From Cyanophora paradoxa CCMP329 (lineage: Eukaryota > Plantae > Glaucophyta), in the NCBI GenBank assembly GCA_004431415.1, contig QPMI01000483.1, positions 328,556 to 392,555 on the forward strand: a stretch of 64,000 nt of DNA. Direction: 5' to 3'. Below are positions 3,148 to 59,358 of the stretch, in pieces. Every line of letters begins with the position of its first letter. The stretch's first letter is position 1. The translations under genes were made by a program, and so were the position numbers. The notes beneath the pieces are model-generated. The model saw nothing but the letters and a program-made list of their open reading frames with translations. It was not told the origin of the DNA and made no database searches.

Positions 3148-3669
3148 GGCTGCGGGGCTGCTCTGAGTGTTGCGTTGAGATGTGACCACTTTGAATAGCA
3201 AGCTGACACTCCCCCGGCTCAGCTGGGCTGGATCTCACAGCTCGCGCCACTAGGTCGCGCCGTTCAGAAGGAGCCTCTCCACGCTGGCTCGCTCTTGAAT
3301 GAGCTTACCCTGCTGTCAGCGCACCGCACTGTGCGCTATCGTATCCCGCAGGCCTGCGGGTGGAAGCGGCCGGCCTGTTCAAACAAAGGTCATGTACCCC
3401 TCGAAAAACCGCCCCCACCGCCGATTCCGGGTTCTGCTCCCGCAGCGCTAGCGCGCGCTACGTGCCCCGGTGATGAATTCGAAGTTACCTGCTTGCTGCG
3501 CTTCTAGATCTCGCTCCCGGGCGCTGCGACGTGTCAATTTCGCGCTAACACCCGCACCGCATTTGCGCCAGGCGCCAGACTCAGAGACACTGTGACCTTT
3601 GAAACATAATGCAAACACGCGCGCAAAGGAAGAGGCAAGTTTCCTAATCTAGAGTGTTAGGGCTGGTGC

Positions 3670-6600: not shown

Positions 6601-7289
6601 CGTAGGAACCCACTCTGCGCTGGGTCAGGAAGCGCGGAAGTACGCGACGGGTAGCACGCGTACGACGTCGACGGCAAACTGCCCCACTTGCCGTAGAGCT
6701 TCACGTTCGAGCTGAGGCCCGTTCCTAGGGGGGCGGTGGAAGACAGCTGGACCAGCACGACGGATCCTGCAGGTTACCAGCATTGAGACAAACAGCGCAC
6801 GCGGGAAGCACGGGCGCACCAACAGGGATTGACGCGGTTACAAAGGCTGCAGACCCTGTTCCGAGACTGCTACCTGACTGTGTGGCTGGAGCCAAGGTTA
6901 TCGCTGCAGTACGAATGTGAGTGTACGCCGCCCGTGCGAGAGCATACGCGGACCAGCACAGGAGGAGCAAAAGATGCTCAACGAAGCCGCCAGCAGAGCC
7001 GCCCGCAGGAGGCGCTGCCTGCCAGCTCGGCACCGCCCCATCGGCGCCCCGCTGTAGCTGGACGGGGACGTCCGCCCACTAAGAAACGATCCAAAGGCGC
7101 TTGATACTCCGGAGTGCACGCTCGCTCCGCCCAGACACGTGGCCGGGACCCTCCTCGAGCAAACGCGAGCTACGGTTCGATGATCCGCGATAAGGCTCAG
7201 CACCGCAAGAAGGACTTCACCAAGAGTCCAGGTGTGCTGCCTTGCTGGGCTGGCTCCGAAACTGGAGGGCGGCCGGGGTACAATAGCCC
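3670..7289 (-). repeat. Left arm of a ~3.6-kb inverted duplication
   Basis: Reverse complement of 9171-12805 with only scattered SNPs and small indels. ORF translations are near-identical in both arms. Confidence 0.95.
3680..7041 (-). CDS. Secreted IPT/TIG + CUB domain protein, copy A (two apparent 1-bp deletions: pseudogene or sequence error)
   Basis: Signal peptide MGRCRAGRQRLLRAALLAASLSIFCSSCA; same exons as copy B. Single-base losses in short homopolymers near 4283 and 4132 break the last exon relative to copy B. Confidence 0.75.
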
Positions 7290-7494
7290 CGCCGTAATTT
7301 CAAGACCTAGACCGTCGGACCTACGTACAGCTCGAGAAGTAGAACTACCTAGGCCTATAGCTAGAGATATCGATTAGAGCTAGAATACTAATGCATGTGC
7401 ATGTCCTCGTTACGCTCATCACAAGTTTAATGATGATTGCAAAAAAAAAAACTGCTTCTATTCTAAGAAACAAAAGGTAGGACGGCTTCATAAA

Positions 7495-9054: not shown

Positions 9055-9170
9055 GGGCGGCTGCTCTCCGGCCGCGCGCTCTCAAACGAGGCGGAAGAAG
9101 CGTGTGCAAACCGCCCGAAGTATTCTTTTGCTGCGTACGTTCGTGCCACCAGCCAGCGCCACAGCCAGCC

Positions 9171-12100
9171 GGGCTATTGTACCCCCGGCCGCCCTCCAGA
9201 CTCCAGTTTCGGAGCCAGCCCAGCAAGGCAGCACACCTGGACTCTTGGTGAAGTCCTTCTTGCGGTGCTGAGCCTTATCGCGGATCATCGAACCGTAGCT
9301 CGCGTTTGCTCGAGGAGGGTCCCGGCCACGTGTCTGGGCGGAGCGAGCGTGCACTCCGGAGTATCAAGCGCCTTTGGATCGTTTCTTAGTGGGCGGACGT
9401 CCCCGTCCAGCTACAGCGGGGCGCCGATGGGGCGGTGCCGAGCTGGCGGGCAGCGCCTCCTGCGGGCGGCTCTGCTGGCGGCTTCGTTGAGCATCTTTTG
9501 CTCCTCCTGTGCTGGTCCGCGTATGCTCTTGCACGGGCGGCGTACACTCACATTCGTACTGCAGCGATAACCTTGGCTCCAGCCACACAGTCGGGTAGCA
9601 GTCTCGGAACAGGGTCTGCAGCCTTTGTAACCGCGTCAATCCCTGTTGGTGCGCCCGTGCTTCCCGCGTGCGCTGTTTGTCTCAATGCTGGTAACCTGCA
9701 GGATCCGTCGTGCTGGTCCAGCTGTCTTCCACCGCCCCCCTAGGAACGGGCCTCAGCTCGAACGTGAAGCTCTACGGCAAGTGGGGCAGTTTGCCGTCGA
9801 CGTCGTACGCGTGCCACCCGTCGCGTACTGCCGCGCTTCCTGACCCAGCGCAGAGTGGGTTCCTACGATGAACTAGTGACCGGCACGGGCGCCATGTCGA
9901 TGCTGCTCGTGGCGGAGAAGCAGTGTACCGGCACCGCGGCCTCCGAATTCCATGTACGCCGCCGCAGCGGCAAACGGTTCGGGGCGCGGCAGCTAGTGAC
10001 GCGGGGCTGCAGATGCTGCTTGAAAATTCGGGGAGCAGTATCGATTACGCCATCCAGTACACGACTGTCAGCTGCCGTGCGCGGAGGGCGGCTCTGGGTG
10101 CGCAGCCAGGGGCAGGCTCGTGACACCCCGTCCGCAGACCTGACGTCGAGCTCGATCACCGGCATCTCCCCGGCGGACGGGCCGTTGGCGGGAGGACGCA
10201 GGGTGACGCTGACGGGTGTTCAGATGGCCTTGAATCTCGCCGACGTCGAGCTTTTGACCATCAAGAACGTACCCGCGACCATCATCTCGTGCGCCCGGCC
10301 CGCCGCCCGCGCGCCGCGCTGGCCGAGCGGTTGGCAGGGCGGGCCCGACAGAGGTCGTCGCGACGACGGGAGATGCGACGAACTTCGGGGGCGCGGGCCA
10401 GGGCGCAGTGCTGCTCGTCTCGAGTTCGTACGGGCTGGTCCGCTCGGTGAACAACGTCTTCACCGTCAACGTGGGCCCGACAATCACGCGCGTCGAGCCG
10501 ACGCGGGGCCCGCTTCACGGGAACTACACGGTGACGATCACGGGCACGAACCTGGCGGCGGACCTGGCGGATCTGCTCACGGTCACCTTCGGCGGCGTGC
10601 CCGTCCTCTCCGTCGACTCTTTCTCGACGACCGTCATCGTCGCCCGCACCGGCAACGCCACCACCATCAACCTGCCTCCCGGCGTGCGCTCCCGGACGCC
10701 CGGGCGCCCCTCGGGCCAGCTCCCTGCCGACGGGCGGCGCAGGTCGTGGATGTGGTGGTAACAAGCACGCGGTTCGGCGCTGCGCGGCTGGCCTCGGGCT
10801 TCACGTACCTGCCGCGCGTGGGCGCGCGCTGCGCCGGCACCGTCGCCATCGACCTGCTCGCCTCCCGCGGCCACAACCTCCTGAACGGTGCGCGGCCGGC
10901 GGCCGGCGGCGGGGGGCCCGAGGGGCGCCGGCCAACGCGGCCCGGGGCGCAGACGCGGCCGGCTCCGGGGCGACCGTGCCGACGCCAACGGGCCAGTACG
11001 GGAGCAACTCGTACTGTACGTGGGTGCTGGCGCCGGTGGCGGCGGCGGCGAAGCAGTTCTACATTTCGTTCCACTACCTGGACGTGCGGAACGGCTCCTT
11101 CTTCCTCTCCTCGGGCGACTTCCTCGACATCTACTCGACCGCGCTCGTCGGCTCCGCGACGACCCGCGTCGCCTCCCTGCAGGGGACCGGCCTCGGCGCC
11201 GTCGCGACGGGCCTCGCGGCGCTGCCGGCCCCCGGCGTCTCGCTGCAGAGCTACGAGGCGATCATCTCGGCGAGCGCGCTGACGTTCGTCTTCACGTCGG
11301 ACGCGGCGGACGAGGGCGCCGGCTTCCAGCTCGGCTACTCGACGGGCTTCTGCCAGCGGGGCGTCCCCGTCGTCTTCACGGACTCGAAGCGCACGAACTT
11401 CGAGGACGGCTCCGGGAGCTACGACTACGGCATGTACTCGCAGTGCGACTTCAAGATCGTGCCGACGGACGTGCAGACGGTCCTCCGCGTCCAGCTCGTC
11501 CTCGAGAAGCTCGACCTCGCCGATGGCAGCACCCTCACGGTCCGCCCCGCGCCCCGCGCCCCCACGCACCCACGGTGCGAGCGGCCTGCATGCAGATCTA
11601 CGACGGCGACAGCCCGTCGGCGTTGCAGCTGGTGCAGCTGCCGAACCCGCAGTACACGGTGCTGCCGATCCGTGTGACGAGCTCGTCCCCGAAAATGTAC
11701 ATCCGCCTGGTGACGGGGGCCCAAACGACCAAGGCCGGCACCGACACGGGCTTCAAGGCCTTCTACGACCAGGCCGTTTCGTACTACATCGACTCGGTGG
11801 TGCCGAAGGAGGGCCCGCTGCGGGGCGGCAACGTGGTGACCCTCTACGGGAACAACATGACGACGGGCGGCGTGGCAGACATCCGGACGGTGAACATCGG
11901 CAACATCCCGGTGCTCGACGTGCTCGAAGCGGTGGTCATCTCGGTGAACCGGACGCGCATCGTGGTGGTCGTGCCGGACCTCTCGCCCCTCACCTCCGGC
12001 TCCATCAACGTCGACGTCGCCGTCGACTCGGCGACGACCGGCGTCTCCGTCGGCTACTCTCTTTACAAAACACTCGCCGGCGAGGTCTGCCCGTACCGCT

Positions 12101-12805
12101 GGCAGACGGAGCAGTCCGCCTCCGAGGGCGGCCTCCTCCTGCGCGACACCATCGACCAGGCGATCGGCAACTACAGCTACAACCCGTACCCCTACACCCT
12201 CGCCCTCCTCCGCTGCCAGTCCTACTCCTCGGGCGTCTACTCGAGCCTCTGGTCCGACGTCTCCTGCGCCTTTGACGCCGCCGCCGGCGCCTTCATCCCG
12301 TGCTCCTTCAACCGCACGGCCTGCAGCCTGCGCCCGCCGAGGGACCCGAACGCGTACGGGTGCGAGCTGCACACCTTCTCGAACACGACGCTGTCGGTGA
12401 AGGAGGACCTGGGCCCGGCGTTCGGGGCGATCGCCCCCTCGAGCTCGTGGTCCGGGGCGCTCGCCGGCCTCTGCGCCAACGCCACCTACTCGGGCTGCGT
12501 CCCCTTCGCGGACGCGGTGAAGGCCTCGGTGGGGGACGCCCTCTACTCGGACCCCTCGGGCTCGCGCATGGAGGCGCTGCAGTTCGCGGCGCAGGCGGCC
12601 CGCCAGCGCGGCGTCGCCCGCTTCCACATCTCCCTCAACCAGATCGCCTACCAGCTCTCCGACACCTTCACCTGGGCCGCCAACGCCACCAGCTGCGACT
12701 GGCCCTGCGGCCTCACCACCGCCTCAACCACCTGCGGCGGCCGCTCCGGGCCCAACCTCTACTCCTCCGTCTTCACCATCTCCTACGGCTGCTAGGCCAG
12801 CGGGC
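9171..12805 (+). repeat. Right arm of the inverted duplication
   Basis: Begins gggctattgtacc (mirror of 7289) and ends 10 bp after the stop codon. Confidence 0.95.
9427..12795 (+). CDS. Secreted IPT/TIG + CUB domain protein, copy B (SP-IPT-IPT-CUB-CUB-IPT-Cys-rich)
   Basis: IPT: ITGISPADGPLAGGRRVTLTG, ITRVEPTRGPLHGNYTVTITGTNL, IDSVVPKEGPLRGGNVVTLYG. CUB: YGSNSYCTWVL...ISFHYLDV...DFLDIY and YGMYSQCDFKI...IYDGDS...GFKAFY. No TM helix seen. Confidence 0.85.
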
Positions 12806-12933
12806 CCCCCGGCATGCCTCTCCGACACGAGCGCCTCATCTGCAGGGGCGCCATTGTGCTTGATTGTAGACAGCATCCCATACGTTTTCCTCGAGCGCGC
12901 GCCGCAGTTCAGTACGTCCCTGCCCAGATGCTA

Positions 12934-24407: not shown

Positions 24408-25189
24408 AAGCGGTCGCCGAGTCGCCTTCAGTCTTGCATCAATATTCCCCTTTTCGATTCGCGATTGTATTCTTAAGCTAAGCCAATCGATAATGCTTTC
24501 GCGCCTGCGCCTAGTTAGTGGCCGTGGATAGCTTAGCTGCGCAGCTTGTGTACGTAGTAGATCTAGGCCTTAGCTAGTGTAGTCTGTAGTGTGTTACTTT
24601 CCATAGTTATAGTGCAACGGAGTCTAATTACTGATACGACTATACGCTTCGATTCGTTTTCGATTCGCTGGGCTTGAATAGATGCATAAACCCTCGCTCC
24701 CCGCAGTTCGAGTCAGGCTCTGGTTCGTACAGCGTACAGGTAGCCGCTGAGCTTTCCGAATAGCTAAAGCTAAACCTCAGATGCCCCTAATCCTCAGAAA
24801 TCAATCCTGCTTTCGTCTCGTTCTAGATCTAGATCTGTAAGCCGCTGATCATGATCATGCTTGCATTTTTGCGTACGCGTCACACGGCGTGTATCGCCGA
24901 GTCGTATGCATTTAATTTCTCAACATCTTGATGCATCTTGCAAATTGATCACTGATCGATATCGTGACCGTCGCGATGGGCCCGGGGATGCGGATCCGGA
25001 GGCGGCGTTCATGATCCGATGATCATGATTGACTCAGTTGAGCTCGAGGCTGCCAGGCCGGGCTGCACAGCTTCCACTGCGGAACTCGCGATCGGAACAT
25101 GTCCCCGCGGCCAGGCCCTCCCCCTCAGGGCCTAGCCGCTGAGCTGCCAGCCTGGCAGGCTGCTCCAGGCCTTGAGGCCTATCATAGTA

Positions 25190-25395
25190 TTGGGGAAGGG
25201 TAAAACACTTCCCCTGTCCCTGTCCCTTGGGCCCAACCCTACCCCAAATCCCACTTCCCCGACCTCCGCAAAACCCGGGCCGCGCGGTACACCCTGAAAG
25301 CGCATCCCCAGGGTCCCCCGAAACCATGTCTCCCGGTCCCGTCCGACCGAAGGGTGATCCAGGAACAGGCACCAACACCCGGGACAAAAATGGGT
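25190..25395 (+). repeat. Dispersed ~210-bp repeat, copy 1
   Basis: Aligns with 56690-56924 (ttggggaaggg...gggccgcgcggtacaccctgaaagc...caccaacacccgggacaaaaatgggt). Confidence 0.9.
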
Positions 25396-26923
25396 CCAGC
25401 GACGCACAGGGAGCAGATATAAGGGCCAGACCAGCTCGAGGTCGTTGTGCGCATCATGCCCGACATTCCGTACTGCAAGAGCGAGGCCGGGCGCGAGCGT
25501 GGTCGCATGGGAGGACGCCGCGCGCGCTAGCCAATCACATTGGAGAGTCCGTTAACTTACCCTGCAAAAACCTCTTCGAGTACCCCCGGCCGCTTTCTCC
25601 CCCGGGCGCCGCAGCTCGGCTCGGCTCAACAATGGTTACGCCTCTCGCGCGCGCGGCAGTTTGCTGTGGCTCACGCACGCTTCCCCCCTCCCTCCCTCCC
25701 GCGCGCCCATGGCCAGCTGTAGCGCTTCCTCTTCAGCTCGGCGCGCGCGCGCGCGCGCCGGCCGGCGCCGTGGCTTCAACTGTCACGCCTCTCGTGCGCC
25801 AACGAGGCGATCGAGGCGCTTCACCCGCGCCAACCGCGCACGCCCCGACGCTATTGCACAAGCCGGCCGCACTTGCAATTGGCCGCGGCCGGCTATGCCA
25901 CTTGCAATTGCAACAAGCCGACGCCCGCGCGGCGCGCGCGCCTCGCGACGCAGAGCCGTCACGGCGTAAGGACCCTCCGGCCGCTTTCTGAGCGGAGCGT
26001 GAGCAGTGACGCACCCGCAGCACATGCGCACTCGTGCACCCGCCACGCCTCACGTGCACGCGCGCGACGGCCGCGGGGCATGCGCAGCCTGGCAGCTGCA
26101 GGAGCTCGAGCACGTCCAGACAAGGTTCCCTCCCCCGCCCCTGGCCCGGGGCCCGCGCCCTATAGCTACATAGCTCTGGCCCGGGCCCGGGGCCTACGTA
26201 TACCTCTAGAGGACAGCTCGCCTCGATCGCGAGGACTGGACAGCTCGCCTGGCATGGCCAGCCTCGGAGCCGGCCCGGCGGCTCGCCCGAGCTCGAGGTT
26301 AAATGCCCTTCCCCGGACCCAACTGACGCGCGCGGCAAGTCAGTGGCCCTTTATAGCTAGGCCCGGCGGCCGCAGCTGCAGCTGCGCATCATGGCATGCC
26401 GAATTCGAAGGTTGCAAGCTACGATATCTAAAGCTCAATCGTTGGACATCGCTAGCAGACTGGCCATATCGATTAGAGGCGAAATTCATGATTCGATGAT
26501 CATGATCATGAACAGTAACTTTGAATTCAGTGACAGCTGCAAAGAATCAATCATTGTGACAGTTGCGAAGCTCGCAATATCGACACTAGTACTGTGTATG
26601 CACTAACGGTGCTAGCACTAGCACTAACCTAGGGCTCGAGCTACTGGGAAAGAAAGGGCGCGGCGGGGAGGGTTGAGGGAGAAAGAAAAAACAGGGTTGC
26701 GGGTGTGGATCATGGGGGCGGGGTGCGGCCGTTCGGGAGCGACTGCGTCGCGTGCAGCTGCCGGAGGAGGCTCTGCGCCGGCGGGCGGGCGTCAGCCGAG
26801 GCGAGAAGGGCGGTCCGGGGGGTGGGGGGGGGTGGGGGGGGGGGTGGGGTGGGGGGAGGGGGGGGGGGGGGTGGGAGGGGGGAGCGCAGGGGGGAGCGCG
26901 GGGGAGGGGCGCGCCTTGATGTC

Positions 26924-29199: not shown

Positions 29200-32100
29200 A
29201 TGCCAGTGCCAGCAGGCGCCGCTGCGCCTGTGGCTGCTAAGGCTGCCGGAGCAGGAGCTCTGATCAGCTCGCCCTCAAAGATCAAGAAGAAGGCGGACGC
29301 TGCGCTTGAGCGTGAGGCAGCGACTGCCCGGTCGCACGGGCCCAGGCGGCGCTCGATAGCGCCAGACGCCGCGCCAAGCGAGGAGGAGATCCTCGAGCAT
29401 GCCCGCTTCCTTGGTGCGGCCCGCCCGTCGCCCCACCCCGCCCCGCCCCGCCCCGCCCCGTCCGAGCGCCAGCAGGGATCGACCCCGCGGAGGAGGCGGA
29501 GCTGCTGTGGATCGCACGGGACGCCCTGACGGCGCCCGTGCCGGATGGCTGGATCGAGCTGGAGGACAAGGACGGGTTCGTGTACTACTACCACGCGGAG
29601 TCGGACGAGAGCACGCGGGCGCACCCGCTGCTCGCGCACTTCGCCGGCCTCGCTCAGAAGGTCCGTCCCCGCGCCGCCCCGGCCGCGCCCCCGAGCCCCG
29701 GCGCAGGCGCTGGAGGGCCTGCCGGACGCGAAGCGGCAGCGCGCCTTCGCGCGGCGGTGCGCCCCGCCGCCCCGCCCCGGCCCGCCCCTGCGGCGGCGCC
29801 TGAGGGGGCGCAGGCTGCTGGAGAGCAGCCCGGCGGAGGCGCTGGCGGCGCTGCGGGAGCAGGCGGGGCAGGAGATCTCCCCCGCCGACGTCGAGGCCGT
29901 CGCCAAGTTCTTCGCCGTGCGCACCCCGGCGGGCCCGCCCCCCATCCCGCCCTTCTCGCCCCCGACCCCGCACCCCAGATCGACCCCCGCGGGGAGCCGC
30001 ACCTGATGTGGCTGGCGCGGCGGGCGGCGGTGGAGCCTCTGCCCCCCGGCTGGTGCGCCCGCGGCCCGAGGGGGCGGGGCTGGGGCGGGGCCGCGGGGCT
30101 CACCGGGGGGCAGGGAGGAGCAGCAGGACGGGGAGGGCCCGCTGTACCGGGAGAGGCGCACGGGGCGGACGACGCGGCAGCACCCCTCCCTGCACCGCCT
30201 CGCCGCCAAGGTCGAGCGCTACCGGCCCCTGCGGCGCGCCCCGCCGGCCACCTCCCCGGCCCTCGACTCGGACCGGGAGGAGTACGGTCAGCCGGCCCCG
30301 CCGCGCCCCCCGCCGGCCCCGCCGCGCCGGCCTCCGACGCGGCACGCAGCGCGGGCGATGGAGATCGCGCCCTGGGTGCCCTTTCTCGAGCGCGGGGAGG
30401 GCCTGGCCGCCGCCCCGCGCCCCTTCTGGCACAACTTCGCCAGCGGGGCGCGCACCCGCGAGGCGCCGGACCCCGCCGCCCGCCGCCTCGCCGCCTCGCG
30501 CATCGCCGCGGCGGCGCGGGGGCGTGCGGCGCGGCGGCGGGCGGCGGCGCTGCGGGAGGAGCGGGAGCACGGCGAGGCCCGCCGCGCCGCCACCCGCATC
30601 GGCCCGCCCCGCCCTGCTTCGCTCTGCCCCGCCGAGCAGCTCCAGCCTGACGCCCGCGCAGAGGCGGCGTGGAGGGGGTACGCGGCGCGGGTCGTGCTGC
30701 AGCACCGGCGGCTGGTGACGTCGGCGGCGCGGGAGGAGCTCGCGGCGGCGGCCGTGCAGGCGGCGTGGCGCGGCCTCCGCGCGCGGCGGGCGTTCCGCGT
30801 GGAGCGGCGGCGGGGGCCGGCGGCGCTGGCGATCCAGTGCGCGTGGCGGCGGCGGCGGGCGCGGCGGCGGCGGCGGGCGCTGGCGAGCGAGCCGCCGAAG
30901 AGCACGCGACGGTCGCGGCGGGGCGAGGAGGGGCCCACCGAGGCCGACGTCGAGGAGTACGCCGGCTTCCTCGGTCCGCCCCGCCCCCGCCCCGGCCCGG
31001 CCCGGCCCGCCCCGTCCTGCCCGCGCGGCGCCGACGGGCGGCGGCAGGGATCGACCCGAAGGGCGAGGCGGAGCTGCTGTGGATCGCGCGGGAGGCGCTC
31101 ACGGCGCCCGTGCCCGAGGGCTGGGCGGAGCTCGAGGACCGCGACGGGTGCGCCCCCGCAGGCCGCGCGCCCCGAGTGCGGGGCCGACGAGGAGGCCGGG
31201 GGGCCGGGGGCAGGTTCGTGTACTACTACCACGCGGAGACGGACGAGAGCACTCGGACGCACCCGCTCCACGAGCACTACCGCGAGACCGCCCGCCGCGT
31301 CCGCCCCGCCCCGCTCGCCCGCCCCGCGGCGGGCGGGCCGACGGGCGGGCGGCAGGCGCTGGAGGCGCTGCCGGACGCGCGGCGGCAGCGTGCCTTCGCG
31401 CGGCGGCTGCTGGAGAGCTCGCCGCGGAGCATGGCGCGCGCCCTCCGCGAGGAGGCGGCCGGCGAGCACGTCTCCCCCGCCGACGTCGGTGCCCGCCCCG
31501 CCCCGCCGCCCGCCCCGTCGCCGCCCGAGAGAGCTCACCCGCCCCGCCAGCGCTCGTCTGCGACTACTTCGGGGTGCCCGCCTCGCCTCCTCCCCGGCGG
31601 GGGGCCGGCGGCTGACGTGGCGGCAGATCGACGTGCACAGAGACGTGCACCTGGTGTGGCTGGCGCGGCGGGCGGCGGTGGAGCCGCTGCCGCCGGGCTG
31701 GGAGGAGGTGCAGGACGAGCGGGGCGCCCACTACCTCGAGCGCCGCACGGGCAAGGCCACCCGCCAGCACCCCGCCCTCCGCCGCTACACCGAGAAGGCC
31801 CGCCCGGCCGCCTCCCTCAGCTCGCCGCGCCGCCGCCGCCCCCCGCTCGCCGGCTCACGCGCCGCCTCAGGTGGCGCGGTACCGGCCGCTCGCGCGGATG
31901 CCCGGGGCAGAGGCGGGCGCCCGGGACCCCCTCGACTCCGACCGCCACCACTACGGTCCCCGCCCCTCCCCGCCCCCGGCCCCGCTCTGCCGCGCCGGCT
32001 GACGGGGCGCGGGGCCGGCAGTGCGGGCAATGGAGATCGCCCCGTGGGTGCCCTTCGCGGAGGGCCGGAGCCCGCTGGGCGGCCCCGCGCGCACCTACCA

Positions 32101-34925
32101 CCTCAACTTCGTGACGGGCGCCCGCACGTACGCCCCCGTCGAGCCGGCCGCCCGCCGCGCCGCCGCCTCCGTCATCGGCGCCGCGTACCGCCGCCTCCGC
32201 GTGGCGCGCGCCTCGGCGGCGCTGCTCGAGGCGCGCCGCGCGGAGCGGCGGGCGGCGGCCGCCGGCGTGCTGGCGGCCGCGTGGCGCGCCTTCGCGGCCC
32301 GCGCGGCGCTGCGCATGGCGCGCCTGCTCGCCGCCGCCGCCCGCGAGGAGCGCGCCGTCGCCGCCGTGCAGGCGGCGTGGCGGGCGCGGGCGGCGCGCGG
32401 GAGAGGGCGGCGCTGCGGCGGCGGGCCGGGGCGGCGCTGGCGATCCAGTGCGCGTGGCGGGGGGCGGCGGGCGGGAGGCGCGGGGGCGGCGCGTGGAGGA
32501 GCTGGCGATGGCGGCGCTGCGGCGGGCGGACGCGGAGGAGCCGTGGGGCCCGCGGGTGCCGCGGCGCCCCGAGGGGGAGGAGGAGTGGCCGTGCGGGGAG
32601 GACGTGGAGACGTACGCGCGCTACATGGGCATCGACCCGGCGGGGGAGGCGAGCCTGCTGTGGATCCCCCGGGACGCCCTGCTGGCGATCATGGTCCCTG
32701 AGGGCTGGAGCGAGCACGAGGACCGCGACGGCTGCGGCTTCTTCTACCACCGCACCGCCGACGTGGCCCGCCGCACCCACCCCCTCCACGACTTCTACCT
32801 CTCCCAGGCAGGCCCCTCCCGCCCCGCCCCGCCGCGCCCGGCCGCGCGCCGCGCCTGACGGGCGGCGCAGGCGGCGCGGTGGCGGGCCTCGGCGGTGGTG
32901 GTGCAGGCGGCGTGGCGGGCGGCGGCGGCGCGGCGGGCGCTGCCGCGGTTGCTGCTGGAGCGGCCCCTCTGGCTCGCCGCCCGCTCCATCCAGGCCTGCT
33001 GGCGCCGCCGCGCGCCCCGCGCCGCCCTCCGCGCCGCCCGCCGCCGCCTCGCCGCCGCCGCCCTCCTCCAGGCCGCCGTCCGCGCCCGCGCCGCCCGCCG
33101 CCTCGCCGTGCGCCGCCCCCGGCCCCGCCCCTTCACGTCCGTCCCCCCTGCAGCCGACGCCGAGCGCGCCCTCCGCAGCGCGTGCGGCGGGGCGCGGCGC
33201 TGCGGCTGCAGGCGGCGGCGCGGCGCGCGCTGGCGCGGGGCGGCGGGCGGCGCTGGGGCGAGAGGCGGCGCTGGGCGGGGCGGCGGGGCGGGTGCAGGCG
33301 GCGTGGCGGCGACGTGCGGCGCGGCTGCAGCTCGCCTCGCCCGCGACGAGCTCCTCTGCCGCGTCCGCGTCCCCGCCCCGCCCGCCCCGCCCCGTCCCGC
33401 CCCCGACCCCGCCCCGCAGCGGGAGGAGGCCTGCGCGGCGCTGCTGCAGGCCGCCGCCCGCGCCCTCTTCGCCCGCCGCGTGCGCCCCGCCCCGCCCGCC
33501 CGCCTCCCGCGCGGCGGGGCGGGCGCGACGGGCGCGCAGCGGCGGCCGAGCTGCTGGCGGCCGCCCGCCTCCGCTCCGCCCTCCTGCTCCAGGCCCGCCC
33601 CCTCGCCCCCGCCTCCTCCTCCCGCGCCCCTGACTCTGGGCCGGCAGCGGCGTGGCGCGGCGCGCGCGCGCGGCGGCCATTCGTGGGGGAGCGCGGCGCC
33701 CGCGCCGCCGCCCGCGCCGAGCGGGTGCGCTGGCCCCTCGCTCCTCCCCCGCCCTCGCCCGCGCCAGCGGCGGCGCTGAGGGCGCGCAGGCGGCGGAGGT
33801 GGTGCAGGCGTGCGCGCGGCGGGCCCTCGCGCGCCGCCGCCGCGCGGGCGAGCTGCTGGCCCGGCGGCGGGCGGCGGAGCGGGCGGCGGCGCTGCGCATC
33901 CAGGCGGCGGCGCGCTCCGCGCTGGCGCGCTTCAAGGTGCGCCGCCGCGCGGGGCGGGGCGGGGCGGGCGGGCGGGGCGTGAGGGGTGCGGGGGCGGCAG
34001 CTGTGGCGCGGGGTGGAGGCGCAGGTCCTCTCCGAAGTCGCCCTCCTCCTCCAGGCCCGCCCCCCGCCCCGGCCCCGCCCGCCCCGCCCCGGCCCTCACG
34101 CCCCCGCCGCAGCGCTTCGCCCGCTCCGCCCTCGCCCGCCTCCGCCTCCGCCGCCACCGCGCCGCCCGCGCCATCCAGGTTCCGCCCCCGCCCGCCCGTA
34201 GCCGTCGCCTCGCCGCCCCCGGCCCGAGCGGCGCTGGCGCAGGCGCTGGCGCGGCGCGCGGCGGCGCGGGCGGAGCGGCGCGCCCTCGCGGCGGCACCCC
34301 GCTCCCGCCGGCCCTCGCTGCTGCCCCGGCCCTCCTCCGCCCCGCCCCGCCCACGCCTGGGACACCCCCTCCCTCCGCTCGTCCCCCGGGAGCACGCCTC
34401 GTCCCTGTACCCCTGTCGAGGGGTACGCCTCGCTGGGCCGCTCGTGGTCCGAGGCGGCCTCGCTCCCGGGGCGGCCCCCGCGCGCCGCCTGCCGCAGGTC
34501 CGGCCCCGCACCTCCCCCGGCCCCAAGCCGCCGGCCCCGCCTCGGGCGACGCCTGGTCGACGCCCCTCCGCTCCGCCGCCCCCGGGCGCCCAAGGTTGCG
34601 GGGAGTCCCGCCTGGGGGTGCGCCCCAAGTCCTCCGCCCCGGCCCGGCCCGCCCCGGCGCCGCTCGTGCACGCGCAGGCGGCGGGCCGTGGTCGGGGGCG
34701 GCGGTGGCGACGGCGGTCTCGCGGCTCTTCGGCGACTTCCCCGCGGCGGGGTCGGCGGCGCGCGCCCTGCGCGAGCCCCGCCGCCGCCTCGCAGCCTCCC
34801 TGCGCCACGAGGCCGCCCCGCAGCTCGCCCCCGGCCCCACCTGGCTCCACGACTACGGCTACCTCAGCCCCGCCGCCCGGCCCCGCAGCGCCGGGCCTGT
34901 CCCTCTCGTCCGCCCACTCGCCTAA
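29200..34925 (+). CDS. Protein with five CEP164-N-terminal-type WW modules and numerous IQ motifs
   Basis: PSEEEILEHARFLGIDPAEEAELLWIARDALTAPVPDGWIELEDKDGFVYYYHAESDESTRAHPL plus four homologues. IQ-like motifs AVQAAWRG, AIQCAWRR, SIQACWRR, RIQAAAR. Confidence 0.8.
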
Positions 34926-35010
34926 GAGTGGCACTAGCTGTACAGCTAGAAAAAACACGTGCGGCGCGTACACGTCACACAGCTGGCCATGGGAACGCCC
35001 GCGCGGCCGC

Positions 35011-35155
35011 TGTTGCCACTCCACTACGTACCCTTTTGCACCACGTAGCAGAATCGAGTTGGACGGGCCTATTACATGATTGCCGGGGCCCCGTGCCCAA
35101 ATCCGCTTTGGGCACGTCGGGGCTAGGGCGCGTCGTGCCCAAAGGCCTGGGCACG
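35011..35155 (+). repeat. Left terminal inverted repeat
   Basis: tgttgccactccactacgtacc...gggcacg; reverse complement of 40636-40780. Confidence 0.95.
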
Positions 35156-35310
35156 GCGGGTAGAGCAGCGTCGTGCCCAAGTCGTGCCCCGCGATGGCGG
35201 GAGAGCAGCCTGGCAGCGCGGCAGGCGGGGGCGTGCAGGCTCCAACTATGTGGTCGTTCTGTGTGTACTTGCATAGCGAAGTTGGCAATCCAGCGGAGTG
35301 CTTGCCGACG

Positions 35311-37535
35311 ATGGGCAACATGGTCCCAGCACCAAAGTAGTGCAGCCCGACCTGGCGCACTACGGCCTGGTGCGCTAGCTAACGTGAACGATATCCCGCG
35401 CCTGATGTCTCCTGCAGGGCCTCCCACCGGCCGGCCCTGCAGCTCCCGCAGCGCTAGCAGCGGTAGCGCCTCGCGCCCCCACGGCCGCATCCAGCGCGGG
35501 CAGCGCCGCCGGGAGCGGTGATGAGGATGACGGGCTGGAGCAGTATGAGCGCTTCCTCAGTCTGGACACGGATGGCATCTTCGGCGGGATCAGCGCTGAC
35601 CAAGCGAAAGACCAGGTACATGATCCGGGCACGATCCGGGCACGTACGGGGCACGTCTGAGCACGGGCCGTGCACGCAGATCTTTGGAAAGGGCGCGCGA
35701 GCGAACATCAAGAACCTGAACCGATTCCTTGCCGCCCCGTTTCGTCTGCACTACGGGGAAGCTGACGGCCTGAGCAAGGTGAGAGGACAGAACACGCTGG
35801 TCATTGCAGACATGGAAGACGCGTGAGTGGCTGCGTTCTTTTGGAAGCAGCACAAGAGCAGCGCAAACCTTGCCTCGCAGGTTGGCCGTCCTCCTGGACA
35901 GGACGGTGGAGACCTCAAGCATCCCAGCGAAGATCAAAGAGAAGTGCACGGAACGGATGAAACAGCGGCTCCAGACCCTCAACCCGTACGAGAAGACCCG
36001 AGCACTGCTGGAGGTCAACAGGATCTACAGGACATGGACGATGATCATGTCAGTCGACAACATCCCGTTCCTTCCGAAGTGCGCCCTTGCCGCTCTCTTT
36101 CTCTTTCTCTTTCTCCCTCTTTCTCCCGCCATGGACGCTAAGCCTCGCCGCAGGCCTGACGTGGAGCCGCCATGGGAAACGAACCTGGCGACAGTGAAGG
36201 AGAAGGCGGCCAGGTCGGGCATAACACACCAGAGCCGGGTTCACGCTGCGAAGCGAAGAGACGACGAGAACTCCGATGGAGGAGGCGGCGCTGCAACCGA
36301 GCATCCGAAGAAGGCGACCAAGAAGGCGCCAGCGGAGAAGAAGGCCGCTACGGAGAAGACGAACCGGGCGCGGAAGCACGAGGAGGCGGAGGACGAGAAC
36401 GCGGCGGAGGCCGCCGTGACCGGAGCACGTTTGGGCACGGCGCGGGCACATTTGGGCACGACGCGGGCACGTCCACAGTCGTCGGGCACGGCTGGGGCAC
36501 GTAATGGGGCACCACGTGCTGAGAAATCGGTGAGCTTTCATGAGGACGTGCTCGAGACGCCCCACGCCCGCTGTCACATTCCAGACACTCATGCAAACCC
36601 GGCGCAGGCTACGGGTGGGCAGAACGCAGAGGACTCAGTGAAGAAGAAGAAGAAGAAGAAGAAGAGGACGCCGGCGCCGAAGGACACTGAGGAAGAGCTG
36701 GAGACAGAGATTGAACCGCAACTGTCGAAGAAGCCCAGGGCAGCGAGCGTGAAGGAGCACACGTCGGCGTCGTCGTCGTCGAAGGTGGCTGCCCGCGCCG
36801 TCCAACGTGTGCATCTCTCCCCCACCTGACGTTCACTGAAGGCAGCATCTGGCCCGGAGAAGAAGGCGGCGAAGGGAAAGGACCCGGAGCACTCAGGCAA
36901 GGCTCAGGAGCAATCTTCGCACAGGGGGCCCAAGCATGCGCCCTCGCGCGACGACGAAGCCAGCACTCAGGCTCCCCCGTGCGTTCCCGTGCTTGGGCAC
37001 GGTCTGGGTACTATTTGGGCATGTCGCGTCCTTGGTCGTGCTGCACTCTCGTGCCCAAACGTGCCCCAATCGTGCCCCAACGTGCCCCATGGTTCTCCCG
37101 ACGAAATCTGATTCCGGAGCGTCGCTGTTGCAGGCGAGAGAAGGGGAGGCACTACGACTTCAACACGATGGACCCTACAGGGTGCTTTCTTCGGTCCGCC
37201 GTGCCTTCTTTCTGCCCGACTGACATGTCAGACGCAGAAAAACGTGGCGGGATCGGTTCCCCCCTGTAGAGATCGTCCCAGCCTTGCGGGCAAGCCGGAG
37301 CCCAGAGGGCGACATTCTGTACATGATCGACGTGTACACCGGCCGGTACGGGGGCCCCGTCGACCTGGTCGACGATTCCCGCGGCACCACGCAGTCTCTC
37401 TTCATCTGCATTGATAGTGTTGCTCTATTAGGGTTTTTGCAGCGTATCTTCCTTAGAATTGGGTCGTGCACTGGTCGTGCCCGGCTCGTGCCCAAACATG
37501 CCCAAATGTGCCCCGTCATGCCCAAACCGACTTGA
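35311..37535 (+). CDS. Transposon cargo/accessory gene of unknown function; spliced, Lys-rich; boundaries approximate and may be two genes
   Basis: Exons GLEQYERFLSLDTDGIFGGISADQAKDQ | IFGKGARANIKNLNRFLAAPF | TWKTREWLRSF...YEKTRALLEVNRIYRTW, then a basic/acidic tract with KKKKKKKKR. GT-AG intron at 35616-35679. Confidence 0.6.
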
Positions 37536-38015
37536 TCCTGAATTTAGCAGTGATTGACGTCGCGGAGCACGATTGCGCATTGAACTGCACATTTGCCATG
37601 TGAACTTAACAGTATTGATATTTTACAACGTTTTGATGAAGAAAGGCGATGCGAAGAACTTCAGCATGACATGTTCCGCGTCGCTCAGAAGTCTGACCAT
37701 CGGACTCGCATCATGATGTGAAGCCAAGGGTCATGAACTCATGATGAGGCCTCGAAGACCTGAAGCAGTTCCGACCCGTCCGAGAGGCCGCACAAGTTGA
37801 ATTTGAGAATGCTGAAGCCTTGTTTAACTCGTATTCATGAAGCTTCATGGTTCGCTCCCTCTTTACCGGTTTCTGCTACTTGCTCGTGCCCACGTCATGC
37901 CCAATCGTGCCCAAGTACGTGCCCAGACGAAGTTCGGACATGCTCAAGGAGGGCACGACTCGGAAACTCTTTCACAACGAAAGGCTATTCCAAAATCGAT
38001 CGTAAACTGGCTGCA

Positions 38016-40585
38016 CTACTTGGCATTAGAGGGGCCCGCCTCAGCCTCAGGCTCGGCGGGGCCAGCCGCGGCCTCTGCCGCGGCAGCGGCCTCCTTCTCG
38101 GCGCTCTTCTGTACTTTCTTCCAAGGTTTCTGGATGCAAGAGCGGTTCTTGCACGCGTCCCTCCCCGACTTCTTGTGGCACTTTGACGAGCAGATGATGT
38201 CTTCGTACTTGCAAATGCACTTCTTGTTCGTGCAGCCAGTCGTGCAGTTGCAGATCTTGCTCGGCCTGTCGATTTCGATGGCGCACCAGTCAAAGAACGC
38301 TTTTCTGCCAGGCAAGACATGGCAGTCAGAGCGCTGAGAAAGAATGCTGGAGGAAGACGGACCTGAGGGTTACAGGTTCGGTGCTGGCGGCGGTGATGCT
38401 CTCGATGAGATGCTTGAACCCGGCAAAGCCGCCGGTCTCGCCTGGAGGGGCAGGATGCCGCATAGAGCACACTTCGTCGGCCTGGAAGAGGCGGGGCTGA
38501 GAGTCGTCATCGTTGCGCTGGACTATACCGGCAGCAGTCTTGAGGATGTACTTGTTGAAGCCCGTGCCGACCGCAGCAATGACCGCGTGCACCATTGCGG
38601 GCATGCGGGCCTCGTCCAGGGCACGCGGATCGCAGTCCTTCACGCTGATGGATACCAGCTGCGCGCCCAACGTGAGCTCCATTGTCGTGTCCAAATGGTG
38701 CTCAAAACCATACCCAAACGTGCCTCGCGGGGCACGTTTGAGTATGATTTGGGCACGTCGGAGCATGGGGTTTGGGCATGACAGAGACGCACGTCGCCGA
38801 CTGCAAGGTTGGCGATCTCCCCGGCTCTCTTGCGGGCGAAGTCAATCATCCTGTTCCTGTACGCCGAGAGACGATCGTTCAGGACCCCTACGTAAGCCTT
38901 GTACTTCTCGTGCTCCTTCTGCGGGAACAATGTCAGTGCCGACAGCCATTAACGTAAACAGGACATAGCGAACCATGAAAGCGATCGGCATCCCCTCGAT
39001 GGTGCCACGACGGAAGCCGCCTTTGAGATGGCGCTCTGCGGAGTCCAAGTACTGCTCCGATTCCTTAGATTCCTCCTCCTCCATGTCCTTCACATACTTG
39101 TCCCAGAGGATCTGCTGCTTGTCGGTGGGCACCCAGCTGTCCCGGGCAGCTGCAGCCTCAACATCTTCGTCCGTGCCGACATCGACAGTGATTCCCGCAT
39201 CCTGCACGACGGGCATGGGAGGGAGCAGCATCAAAGCGTTCAAGAAGGCCTAGGGAGGTGTGCACCTTCATGAGCTCCTGGAGCGTAGTGCCCTGCACGA
39301 CCTCCCGCTCGTTGTAGACACGATCAGAGGAGGCGGGAGCCAGGTTTCCGAATCGCTCGGACGGATCTCTGTTGAACATGACCTTGAAAGGCGTCTGCTT
39401 GTGCCCCTTGGTGAAGATGGATGTGTTCATCTGCCACTGGACCTGTGCCTGGGTTGGTTGCAGGGCGCGAGCATGTCGGCACGGTCATACCGGGCCCAGG
39501 GCGGACACCCAGTCTTTCGTTCCGTTGAAGAAGCAGTACGCAGTGACTCGGCGGCCGAGCGTCCGGTTCGCGCGCTCCACAGAACCTGCAAAACACGGTC
39601 ATACCCGAACATGCTCAAACATGCTCGGCACGTGCTCAAAAAGATCGTTGGGCACGATTGAGCATGATGTTGGGCATGTCGCGGGCATGACGCGGGCATG
39701 GCGGGGGCATGGCGAACCTTGGTGCCAGGGACGGTAAGGCGCGCCGGTGATGATCACTATCTTGCGCCCCGTCACTCGCTGCCATTGCTTGCACGTCGAG
39801 CGAACAACCTGCGTCCACTTTCAGCTGATATGACGGCCCTAGGCAGACGTCCAAATGTACCCTGTTTACGAACTCGGACCCGTTGTCGTGATGCAGCACT
39901 TGTGGGACTCCCATCACCTGGAAAATCTCGACAAGAGCCTGTGCGACGCACCAGGCGGCCTTGAATTCCAGCGGCCTCAGGATGCTGCCTTCATGTCCCG
40001 CTCCCAGACCAGCGCGTTGTAGCGTTCCGTCTCGTCGAGTGCGCGCTCCGCGTTGGGATTCCCCTGCTCGTCCTGCATGTCCTTGTGCTTCCGGAATGGC
40101 GCTAATTCGTTGCACGCCTTTATGAACTCTTCGTACGTCCAGCGCACGGTGTGCCGCGTGCTGGTCGTTTCCTCGCTGGGCGCTGCGCCGCCGTCCGAGC
40201 CGTCCGATTGCCGCTGGGTCGCAGCAGTTGGTGCCCTACGCTGCTCCGGAGGGACGACATACGCGCCAGGCGGCGGGCCAGCTGCTGCCGTGCTGTTCCC
40301 GCCACCATTGCTTGAACTGCTCGAAGGCCCCGCGCGTGCCTGCTGGAGCTGATCTAAGAGAGATCTAGCAAGATGCCCGCCAGGACAATGGCCGCGGTGG
40401 CCCTCCTTGTGATCGCAGTCGCAGCTCGAGAACGACGAGATCAGCTGCTCGATGTGGCAGGTACACTTGCGGCCGCACCACGCGCGACCCGCGAGCACAG
40501 CTGTCTGTAGCGCGAAGCTGCAGAAGACGCAGAACTGCAGAATCTGGCCGGCCGCCTGAATCTCCTCCGGCGACAGGCCCAACAT
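38016..40585 (-). pseudogene. Ginger2 (KRBA2/SCAND3-like) integrase/transposase with an internal deletion
   Basis: ILRPL...VAQALVEIFQVMGVPQVLHHDNGSEFVN; GAPYRPWHQGSVERANRTL; VQWQMNTS...QTPFKVMFNR; C-terminal CNCTTGCTNKKCICKYEDIICSSKCH. The HHCC finger and first catalytic Asp are absent, with a frame break at ~39985. Confidence 0.85.
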
Positions 40586-40635
40586 CGCTGCAGCTGTCTG
40601 GGCTCTAACACCTGTCGTGCCCAACACAAAGCTTA

Positions 40636-40780
40636 CGTGCCCAAGCCTTTGGGCACGACGCGCCCTAGCCCCGACGTGCCCAAAGCGGATTTGGGCACGG
40701 GGCCCCGGCAATCATGTAATAGGCCCGTCCAACTCGATTCTGCTACGTGGTGCAAAAGGGTACGTAGTGGAGTGGCAACA
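40636..40780 (-). repeat. Right terminal inverted repeat
   Basis: Ends ...gtagtggagtggcaaca, followed by the TSD gccgc. Confidence 0.95.
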
Positions 40781-41038
40781 GCCGCTCCGAACGCGGATTG
40801 AGGGGGTAGGGGATTGACGGAGCAAATCGCGTACGCGTCGAGTTGCGGTCGCCGGTCGCCGGTCGGGCCGGGTCGATCCGACCGTCGGCACGGCGCGCGC
40901 GGAGACGATCGGCCATCGCCGACGGAGTTGGGCGTACGCCGTGATCAGGTGCGCTCGTAGCGTGCGACGCGTGTTATCAATGCGCTAAGCTTGCTTTGGA
41001 TCGCCGCGCAGCCCTGGGCGAGTTGCTGAGCGCTTCGG

Positions 41039-56682: not shown

Positions 56683-56689
56683 ATTGCAA

Positions 56690-56924
56690 TTGGGGAAGGG
56701 GAAATCACTTCCGAGGTTCCCCTAGCCTGTCCCTGTCCCTCGGGAGCCAACCCCACCCCAAATCCCGTTTCCCCGACTTCCTCAAAACCCGGGCCGCGCG
56801 GTACACCCTGAAAGCCCATCCCTAGGCCTAGGGGACCCCGGAACCAAGTCTCCCGGCCGGTCCCGTCCGACCAAGCCCAAGGGCGACCCAGGAACGGGCA
56901 CCAACACCCGGGACAAAAATGGGT
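56690..56924 (+). repeat. Dispersed repeat, copy 2
   Basis: Homologous to 25190-25395 with small insertions. Confidence 0.9.
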
Positions 56925-57389
56925 GCAATCCGCGGAACTTCGGCAGTGCACGTGCAATTGCGAAGTCAACTAGTCGACTCGAATTCATGATGCTCGCACT
57001 GCGACAGTTGATCATGAGGCTGAGCTCAAAGACTCTGGGCGCGGGTACGTATACGTATACGTGGATGTGCATGCGACCTCACTGAGTCAAGTTGGGCCTT
57101 CACATGCCATGATGTAATAGCTGCATTTCACTCAGTGACTCCCCCAACGTTGCACCGCTACTGTTCCGTGGCACCGCCATGGCCACTGCCCCCCCGCCAT
57201 ACACGACCCAGTGTGTCGCGAGCGCCATTGCCAAGTTCAAAATTTCTTTCCTGTATACTCCTTTCCTAGATCACGACTACTGGTACAACATCTGCTTGCG
57301 TCCTAGGTCTCAACGCAGAGCGAATCAGGGAATCAAAACTGCCTTGACTGCAGCCAATCCTGGCGCCCAAGGGGGCGTCCGGAGGACGC

Positions 57390-59358
57390 TTAGTAGGCGT
57401 CGTCGCCCTCGGCGTTGAGGCCGGCCATCCGGCTCTTGACGCCGCGCGAGCGGAGGTCCGCGGCGATGGTGCGCTCGTCGGCGAGGTCTGCGCGCGGCGC
57501 GTCAGCGACGAAACGGGGGCGAGGCGCGCGGGTGCGGGGGCGGGGCTCGAGACGCACTGGCGACGTACTCCTCCGCCAGCTTGACCTCCTGGACGAGGCG
57601 CATCTCGTTCGAGAGGCGCTCGCCGTAGGTGAGGAGGGTCTGGAGTGTGATCTGGGGCTTGCGGAACTCCGGGAGCGGGGTCTTGGTGTTCACGATGCGC
57701 TTCGACAGGTTCTCAACGCCGGTCGTCTCGATGAACTTGCTGCGCCACGCGAAAAGGAACGGTAAGGAAACAGCGCGCTCAATCTGCCGCGGCAGAACGG
57801 GGCTGACCGGATCTCGTCGTCGTAGATGCGGGAGCGGAGCGAGCCGAAGAAGTCGATCGAGCGGTCGGGGAAGTGGTCGACGAGGGCGGCAACGTCGTTC
57901 TCCGAGATGCCGTCCTCCTTGAAGATGCCCCAGCACACGCCGATGCGGTCCTCGCGGGTCGGGTTCCAGTAGAACTTCTCCATACGGCCGTCACGGATGA
58001 GCGGGGCGTACAGGGTGGCGAAGTCGTTGCCAGTCACGACGATCGGGACGCGGGGGAGATCCTCAGCGTTGTACATGCCGGGCATCTGGGGCGCCGGCGG
58101 TCAGGGCGACCGGCGCCGGATCGAATTCGAGGCGCTCGCACCTGGACGTTGGTGGGGTTGTCGGCGATGTTCATGAGGGTGGCGTTGACCATCTGGTTGT
58201 TGACGGTGTACTGGGTGGTGCCGCCCATACGGCCAGCGCCGGCATCCAGATCGTTGATGTGGAGCACGCACATCTTGCCCTTCTTGATGACCTCCGCCGC
58301 CTCGCGGTAGCGCTGGCGGATGAGCTTCGCGGGCTCACCAGCGCTGGCGTCCTCGAGCTCGCCGGAGCTCATGAGGATGGGCTCAATGCCGAGCGCCTTG
58401 TAGACGAGCTCGCACTGGAAGGACTTGCCCTGGCCCTTGCCACCCCAGATGCCTAGAGTGCGAGTTTAAGAGAAACGAAAGACCGATGGAGCGCGCAGGC
58501 TAGGCGAACCGAGGATGAGCGGGACCTTGACCTTGGGCAGGTCGAGGAAGTTCTTGGTGATGTGGAGGACTGCGCGCGCAGGCCACGATCAGCCCGTGCA
58601 CTCTACAACGTACGACAGAAAGCGCGCGGCAATGGTCCCCGGCGCACCAATCTTGTCCATGAAGGTGGGGCAGATGTAGAAGTCGCCCTGGATGTTGCCG
58701 AAGGTGCGCTTGGCGGTGTTGTAGTACTCAATAGAGTCCTGGATCACAACGTGGGTCGAGCCGAGGCCCATGCCGGCGCCCTGGAACTTCTTGTCGACCA
58801 TGCCGCGGCCGCGGCGGATGTCGAGCTGGTCGTTGCCGGCCGACGAGTCGTTGGCGAGCGACGAGCCCCAGCCGTCCGAGTAGCCACCGCCGGACTTCTT
58901 GGGCGCCGGAGGCGCGGAGTAGCCGCCGTCGGGGCTGAAGCTGCCATCGGGGTTGAGGCCGGCCTGGACCGAGAACTCGACCTTGCCCGCCGCGACCTTG
59001 GCGCCGGCAAGGGGGTTGAAGAAGAACGAGCTCTTCTTCTCCACGCTGCCAAAAGCCGCCGCCTTCACGCTGCGCGCCAGCCGATCAGCGCGCGCAACGC
59101 CGATCATCGAGCATATCCGGCATCGGCGCGCGCGCGCGACATCTGCGAAACGCTCTCACCTCTTGACCTCCTGGGCGACCTGATCGGAAGAAACGAATCG
59201 CACATGAGATTCGGCCGACGACGGGTTGCGCGCAACCGCCCCAATAATCGGCGTCCGTGGCACGGGTCGGGCCCGCAGCTCACCTTGCAGGTCTTGGAGG
59301 TCGAGGCGGTGGCCGGAGCCGACGAGAGGGCCGCGACGGGGGTGCCGACGAACGCCAT
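57390..59358 (-). CDS. rca: Rubisco activase (green-type AAA+), plastid-targeted
   Basis: Transit peptide [14 protein letters not shown]; [10 protein letters not shown]; [20 protein letters not shown]; [39 protein letters not shown]; [24 protein letters not shown]. Confidence 0.97.

Follow-up and report, generated by a model that had tools for sequence, protein, structure and literature searches.

A 64,000-bp stretch of the genome of the glaucophyte Cyanophora paradoxa CCMP329 (contig QPMI01000483.1, positions 328,556 to 392,555; hereafter the window, to which all coordinates refer) contains a 5.77-kb transposon of the Ginger2/TDD type (35011-40780) which carries two genes and, mostly in its non-coding parts, arrays of the short motif GGGCACG and its variants. 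One gene specifies an integrase-type transposase, the other an orphan protein here called the cargo. Within the arrays the motif recurs with the period of the DNA helix, and its core is conserved while the spacers have diverged. Some protein-binding role for these arrays is, in our opinion, very probable. The particular reading put forward here, at a little under an even chance, draws on the analogy with VANC proteins: the arrays may be sites, set in helical phase, at which a protein of the element's own binds. This would most likely be the cargo product, which would load along the element and oppose silencing by CG methylation. The DNA-level analysis concerns the window copy, other members of the family being known from protein models; searches with the spliced genes of the window made use of their separate exons or of existing database models.

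Distribution of the motif

An earlier note, made from the letters of this DNA alone, had described motif clusters in both terminal inverted repeats (TIRs) and in seven internal intervals, and had found the motif largely to avoid the recognizable exons. All of these clusters are present. GGGCACG occurs 34 times in the 5.77-kb element (5.9/kb) versus 16 times in the remaining 58 kb of the window (0.27/kb), making it 22-fold denser inside, and TTGGGCACG is found 17 times in the element and 0 times in the remaining 58 kb. In Markov nulls (orders 1-3) derived from the element GGGCACG averages 1.5-6.7 copies and never exceeds 14. Among all 5.8-kb tiles of the window this is the top-enriched 7-mer (z 26).

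Under the host gene model six of the 34 copies are exonic where 20.6 would be expected (p 4e-7, a value which, like the other exon-avoidance p-values, is optimistic since sites inside one array are not independent); if 36416-36607 is intronic the figures become 1 and 19.9. The wider core G[GA]GCA[CT]G has 57 sites, with 9 or 3 of them exonic depending on the gene model versus 33-35 expected. C. paradoxa has many short introns, with a mean length of 86 bp (PMC6704402); within the element every intron longer than 80 bp contains an array. Two of the intervals, 38659-38792 and 39586-39717, had been taken for transposase introns, and they are exactly that, with GT..AG boundaries.

Helical phasing of the arrays

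The seven internal arrays are each 50-120 bp long and are spaced 0.4-1 kb apart. Array 1 (35627-35676, plus strand) lies in the cargo intron 35616-35679 and consists of five units separated by 11, 11, 10 and 10 bp. Array 2 (36423-36513, plus strand) has eight units (gaps of 10, 11, 10, 11, 19, 11 and 12). The cluster which the earlier note placed at 36421-36515 thus exists, and its supposed non-coding nature is less secure: it is in frame and stop-free, so that it is either an intron (GT at 36416, AG at 36478 or 36607) or coding, as the host gene predictor calls it. Array 3 (36995-37087) occupies the cargo intron 36979-37133 with two plus-strand units followed by four on the minus strand (gaps 10, 11 and 10), while array 4 (37465-37523, minus strand; six units with gaps of 11, 11, 10, 10 and 10) is situated between both genes. 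Immediately downstream of the transposase stop codon array 5 (37885-37957) has four minus units (gaps 11, 10 and 12) and then two plus units. The remaining two are inverted duplications in the transposase introns: array 6 (38662-38780, in intron 38659-38792) with five minus then four plus units, and array 7 (39600-39711, in intron 39586-39717) with three minus then six plus units, mostly of the CATG variant type. The overall orientation is plus from 35627 to 37023 and minus from 37050 to 37924, with minus-to-plus switches within both transposase introns.

The same-strand gaps within the arrays are 10 or 11 bp in 21 of 31 cases, and 27 of the 31 are in phase with a 10.5-bp repeat at one or two turns. 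Permutation gives a mean of 7.5, and 27 was reached in 0 of 200000 permutations; the best-fitting period is 10.5-10.75 bp. Where neighbouring units were picked by GCA at a lag of 10 or 11, the other core positions agree at frequencies of 0.93, 0.67, 0.60 and 0.77, compared with 0.23-0.50 in the spacers. No other motif in the window shows comparable phased behaviour with core conserved over spacer. Alignment of the arrays with one another revealed nothing shared beyond the motif, each having its own unit of 10, 11, 20 or 21 bp; we conclude that the arrays grew separately and converged on one core and spacing. Such convergence is to be expected if a site for cooperative binding has been under selection. 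A neutral minisatellite should keep its spacers as well as its cores. Helical phasing and a conserved core together strengthen the case for a protein-binding site.

These data bear on two further explanations, the first being that the arrays are functionless: minisatellites for which the TIR motif was the seed and which then evolved neutrally, or else foldback or introner remnants. Tandem Repeats Finder (TRF) units of 20-21 bp with 84-95% identity do imply recent slippage, and two of the introns are hairpin-forming inverted duplications. We nevertheless find this explanation very improbable, for the same core and period have been reached by seven arrays whose spacers differ, they align with the TIR no better than with each other beyond the motif, three of them are unidirectional, and no duplication was seen flanking the intron 38659-38792. 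Structured RNA was also considered as a common function. Arrays 6 and 7 fold as hairpins (z -5.4 and z -5.9), the unidirectional arrays do not, and Rfam gave no matches; this candidate was rejected.

The second explanation is that the arrays act by DNA mechanics or nucleosome positioning alone, in the manner of the Periodic An/Tn Clusters (PATCs) of Caenorhabditis elegans. In that nematode PATCs, which go back to minisatellites of Helitrons, shield genes against silencing (PMC4947018; bioRxiv 10.64898/2026.08.08.743475), and the Cyanophora arrays resemble them in being helically periodic, non-coding, transposon-linked and proposed to act against silencing. The match of the period to the helical repeat, the T-rich 3-nt spacers (TTT, ATT) and the intronic location all fit this precedent. 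PATCs, by contrast, are extended An/Tn tracts acting mechanically, and the present arrays are short runs of a conserved GC-rich 7-mer in which the information resides (1.1-1.8 bits per position, inflated by core selection, versus 0.2-0.4 bits in the T-run). With lengths below that of a nucleosome, and with the TIR copies forming inverted pairs and not phased runs, a purely mechanical role is in our view very unlikely.

The CATG variant

Variants of the type GGGCATG are real, numbering 11, or 17 if GAGCATG is included; the earlier note had regarded them as the expected product of deamination at a methylated CpG, a pattern which they do not match. Non-coding motif sites include 16 with TG and 2 with CA, all 17 TG variants lie to the right of 37000, and the observed/expected CpG ratio of the element is 0.99, so that it is not CpG-depleted. 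Neutral deamination is a poor fit because the decay of methylated CpG should yield TG and CA equally, and it was rejected as the source on these counts and on the one-sided location. CG cores predominate in the left half of the element and TG cores in the right half. The simplest reading, which is suggestive only, is that CATG is a tolerated variant which was later duplicated, the last G being fixed. Proteins which read TpG and methyl-CpG alike typically accept either C or T in front of an invariant G.

Ends of the element

The element is bounded by a 5-bp target-site duplication (TSD), GCCGC, at 35006-35010 and 40781-40785. Its TIRs are 145 bp long (left, 35011-35155, plus strand; right, 40636-40780, minus strand) and match at 144 of 145 positions, and both ends begin with TGTTG. 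The outer 81 bp of each TIR are free of the motif, inverted pairs of which are found in the inner 65 bp: in the left TIR as two divergent pairs (35092-/35110+ and 35134-/35149+), and with the same pairs in the right. Immediately inward of the left TIR are two further subterminal copies on the minus strand (35172-35189; 11 bp apart), and a lone minus-strand copy (40616-40622) lies in the stretch which separates the right TIR from the start codon of the transposase gene at 40585, the TIR being located 50 bp upstream of this ATG. The cargo gene (plus strand) and the transposase gene (minus strand) are convergent, each beginning near the inner end of a TIR with motif pairs directly upstream of its start codon. 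The left TIR is probably the promoter region of the cargo gene. In maize MuDR two convergent genes are likewise read from near-identical long TIRs and internal deletion derivatives are common. The likeness lies in convergent genes which start just inside the TIRs; the transposases are unrelated.

This arrangement would also suit a host transcription or chromatin factor, recruited to the arrays as element-borne enhancers with which the cargo has no connection. Any cooperative DNA binder could explain a conserved core and helical phasing, and the motif pairs immediately upstream of both start codons are where such a factor might act. We think it quite unlikely, since TTGGGCACG and its phased clusters are absent from the 58 kb of gene-dense host DNA in the window, admittedly a small sample.

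An alternative closer to the element itself is that the transposase binds the motif, through an N-terminal Cys/His extension or a Cys-rich C-terminus, and that the cargo does something else; the arrays would then be subterminal and internal loading sites for transposition or self-activation. It is favoured by the mirror-image motif pairs of the two TIRs and by the presence of Cys-rich regions in the transposase. Integrase-type enzymes, however, engage the outer TIR ends, and it is precisely these which lack the motif. Most sites are 0.6-2.9 kb from the nearer end of the element, and a family-wide orphan gene would be left unexplained. A precedent is provided by AtMu1, the transposase of which alone activates and demethylates cognate copies (bioRxiv 10.64898/2026.08.24.746577). 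On balance we judge this alternative unlikely, if deserving of serious attention.

The transposase and classification of the element

The transposase gene (38016-40585, minus strand), which is broken in the window copy, comprises exons at 40585-39984 and 39983-39861 (with a deletion junction between them), 39808-39718, 39585-39509, 39442-39266, 39201-38974, 38918-38793, 38658-38363 and 38304-38016. Matches to an integrase-type DDE core are weak but consistent (rve, E 0.0017; IS481 model, E 4e-5), and the PDB matches, also weak, are to retroviral integrases (E 0.007-0.05). The window copy retains the second Asp (HHDNG) and the Glu (QGSVERAN), with 41 residues between them by count, together with a Cys-rich C-terminus; the N-terminal extension of approximately 200 amino acids bears a Cys/His cluster. 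The region of the first catalytic Asp is missing from the window copy and from every transposase model retrieved. In the family member P0012 an H2C2 finger is recognizable (PF17921, E 1.6e-4, below the Pfam cut-off); the window copy has lost it. Inspection of the exon translations and P0012, which do not cover the first-Asp region, revealed neither a GPY/F nor a YPYY motif, a trait by which Ginger2 is told from Ginger1, and the element contains no reverse transcriptase.

Elements of the Ginger2/TDD group are defined by TGTNR ends and TIRs of 45-297 bp (Bao et al. 2010, PMC2836005), and have a TSD of 4 or 5 bp (PMC10045372). Because the TGTNR ends, TIR length, TSD, integrase-type core and H2C2 finger fit this description (PMC2836005), we assign the element to the Ginger2/TDD type, as the earlier note had done, using structural criteria (termini, TIR, TSD and domains) and not a tree. 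The 5-bp TSD is shared with TDD-4 and TDD-5 of Dictyostelium, and the failure to see GPY/F, YPYY or a reverse transcriptase is a further point of likeness. IS3EU/GingerRoot elements have TA..TA ends, a 6-bp TSD and no HHCC; an identity with these is excluded by the TG..CA ends, the 5-bp TSD and the presence of HHCC in the family. The Cyanophora element differs from Ginger2 in its second multi-intron gene and internal motif arrays, in its D..E spacing of 41, long N-terminal extension and glaucophyte host. Nematostella Ginger2 families prefer RTATAY, whereas the target here is GCCGC in GC-rich DNA, a single site to be set against a family-level trait. A literature search found no description of a second gene or of motif arrays for Ginger2, Repbase and most subscription journals being outside its coverage.

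The cargo gene

The earlier note had drawn attention to a second, Lys-rich spliced gene, and this is real: the EukProt model P0002 (tig00020848_g14614, C. paradoxa) maps onto it exactly, exon for exon, and the window is on this ground equated with contig tig00020848. The gene (35310-37409, plus strand), an orphan which is broken in the window copy, has approximate exons at 35310-35369, 35418-35615, 35680-35822, 35881-36078, 36154-36415 (or to 36529), 36608-36784, 36842-36978, 37134-37181 and 37238-37409. In other copies the product is approximately 620 amino acids long. The fullest model, P0005 (621 amino acids), begins with a short beta-rich region, followed by a helical region of approximately 160 amino acids and a disordered 208-amino acid linker, in which Lys and Arg make up 21% and a poly-Lys run occurs; a C-terminal region of approximately 185 amino acids completes it. 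By eye the N-terminal 65 amino acids look Tudor/SH3-like and the C-terminal region resembles a chromodomain, impressions which were not confirmed.

An exhaustive phmmer search of 1.84 billion representatives matched only copies of the family, with no relatives outside it. GC content at third codon positions is 0.78 for the cargo and 0.77 for the transposase, and 0.92 and 0.95 in two host exons. On account of the lack of a host paralogue and of the transposase-like base composition, an origin as a captured host fragment was rejected. An origin as an offshoot of the transposase was likewise rejected, there being no similarity to P0012 (best E 2.7; P0012 is without the catalytic core). Judging from these comparisons the cargo is a long-resident gene of the element.

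Deletions in the window copy

Three internal deletions were located by comparison with the family models. At the first (35330-35340, plus strand) approximately 60 codons near the start of the cargo, which are kept in P0001, P0004, P0007 and P0011, have been lost, and the frame from the ATG at 35310 terminates at the stop codon 35338-35340. At the second (37405-37415, plus strand) the last 111 amino acids of the cargo (511-621 of P0005) are gone after 37409. The third (39977-39990, minus strand; at 39983/4) has removed at least 161 codons of P0012 including the H2C2 finger, and we infer that the region of the first catalytic Asp was lost there as well; the transposase frame terminates at 39977-39979. 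With both genes broken, the window copy is therefore a dead, non-autonomous deletion derivative, and an intact element should exceed 7 kb. Under the proposed mechanism the window copy would supply cis sites only, and intact copies would be needed in trans.

The family in Cyanophora

Protein searches revealed at least nine family loci, with cargo models on eight contigs and transposase models on four. Near-identical cargo models are found at eight of the nine loci, and the cargo adjoins the transposase at three: in the window, and on tig00020934 and tig00000042, where the two genes have consecutive gene ids. Cargo residues 71-190 are identical across the six models tested, and because the shared exons are also near-identical in protein sequence the family must be very young. 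A strongly enriched, largely non-coding motif, with a cargo which recurs throughout the family and is recognizable as no host fragment, leaves the earlier note's proposal standing on those points of sequence where it had allowed that it might fail.

The four transposase models retrieved are all partial, and search length limits favoured partial models. Large internal parts are skipped in P0010, P0012 and P0009, from other contigs; P0010 passes from residue 51 straight to the last intron, and its neighbour P0011 keeps a near-complete cargo. The skipped parts may represent further deletion derivatives or gene-prediction errors. A search for distant transposase relatives returned only P0009, under length limits which would exclude a full-length model of approximately 880 amino acids. 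TIR patterns and protein queries gave no match in viral, metagenome or prokaryotic collections. A triple phased motif does occur in 27 viral contigs, which have no other sequence in common with the element and were treated as unrelated repeats. The apparent variation in array length in P0003 arises because the gene prediction placed a GT-AG intron about a 1-nt indel, and P0013/L001 is an unrelated 54-amino acid cluster member.

Other features of the window

A host gene encoding an IPT/TIG domain (Pfam E 8e-9) is present as a 3.6-kb inverted duplication (3662-7292 and 9168-12813), the arms of which are 99.3% identical and stand head to head around a 1.9-kb spacer; either the duplication is genuine and recent or it arose during assembly. 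Regions of lower GC hold two copies, 79% identical, of another dispersed repeat (25189-25398 and 56689-56927), for which no clear TIR pair was found in the window; ATGATCA words cluster near the first of these, at 24846-25020 and 26496-26503. The host gene region to the left of the element (29395-32851) contains internal duplications of 200-500 bp with 67-83% identity. Minus-strand exons at 57693-58465 specify an AAA protein resembling Rubisco activase (Pfam AAA, E 1e-10; activase helical domain, E 1e-20), and an exon at 477-971 (minus strand) a C2-C2_1 domain as in RPGRIP1-like ciliary proteins (E 4e-15).

Proposed mechanism and significance

We infer that the sites bind a protein, that this protein is the cargo product and that the effect is one of anti-silencing. 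On this proposal G[GA]GCA[CT]G would be the binding site of an element-encoded protein, most likely the accessory cargo protein, and would have been amplified separately, by local duplications of 10, 11 and 21 bp, wherever there was non-coding room: in four or five introns, in the gap between the genes and in the inner part of the TIRs. With a site at each turn of the helix all copies would look to the same side of the DNA and the protein could bind cooperatively as a short row, and arrays every 0.4-1 kb would seed it over the entire element. Once bound it would hold off host CpG methylation and leave the promoters and body of the element accessible, in the manner of VANC in VANDAL. A C or T before the fixed G would suit a protein which still binds methylated CpG, as T mimics 5-methyl-C. 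C. paradoxa methylates CG sites only. Of its CpGs 32% carry the mark, with high levels on silent genes and DNA transposons (PMC12344493), and a host which silences its transposons in this way makes an anti-silencing role plausible.

Several observations weigh against the cargo-based proposal. Most repeats are methylated whatever their age, with no sign of escape (PMC12344493). The cargo need not be the binder: DNA might be bound by the two Cys-rich regions of the transposase, and a 2026 preprint shows that a transposase on its own can attach to cognate copies and demethylate them (bioRxiv 10.64898/2026.08.24.746577). Searches of the cargo against Pfam, NCBIfam, PHROGs and PDB sequences gave nothing credible, and two single-sequence AlphaFold models had mean pLDDT values of 37 and 40, with meaningless Foldseek matches. 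Lastly, the excess of TG over CA derives partly from duplicated units (7 clusters versus 2).

The closest functional parallel is VANDAL/VANC. In the part of the VANC report drawn upon here (PMC5735166), the motifs to which VANC binds have multiplied through tandem repetition. Both systems have an extra element gene, a short motif tandemly amplified in introns, intergenic DNA and termini and shunning exons, and a host which silences by CG methylation. They differ in that the VANDAL transposase is Mutator-type and that of the Cyanophora element has an integrase-type core; VANC contains DUF1985 and DUF287, neither of which was matched in the cargo by Pfam at E up to 10. The VANC21 motif is AT-rich (YAGTATTAY) and lacks the CpG found here, and one-turn phasing is not mentioned in the same part of that report (PMC5735166). 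The function of VANC is proven, that of the cargo proposed. TnpA of CACTA/Spm is also the product of a separate accessory gene associated with terminal motif clusters (bioRxiv 10.64898/2026.08.24.746577), comparable to the inverted pairs of the inner TIR, but its sites and demethylation are confined to the termini and those of Cyanophora are mostly internal. TnpA, moreover, derives from a transposase, and the cargo has no similarity to P0012. The element is evidently not a member of the VANDAL/VANC or TnpA groups, though it may work like VANC.

Whether the system represents independently evolved, sequence-specific anti-silencing, in which an orphan of new fold binds phased arrays cooperatively, regardless of CpG methylation, and so reopens the element, is a tentative suggestion which we hold to be possible and somewhat doubtful. 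It can be tested directly, as the motif and its spacing are defined, the host is in axenic culture, and enzymatic methyl sequencing (EM-seq) and RNA sequencing data exist. Even if the cargo is not the binder, the literature searched yielded no other two-gene Ginger2 whose introns carry arrays in helical phase; if it is, it would be a DNA-binding protein to which no relatives are known and which might be turned into a tool for targeted demethylation. Sequence-specific anti-silencing by transposon-encoded proteins has been shown so far in flowering plants (VANC, TnpA and AtMu1). If the suggestion is correct, this strategy would arise repeatedly where hosts methylate their transposons, here in another superfamily and in a glaucophyte with a CG-only repressive methylome.

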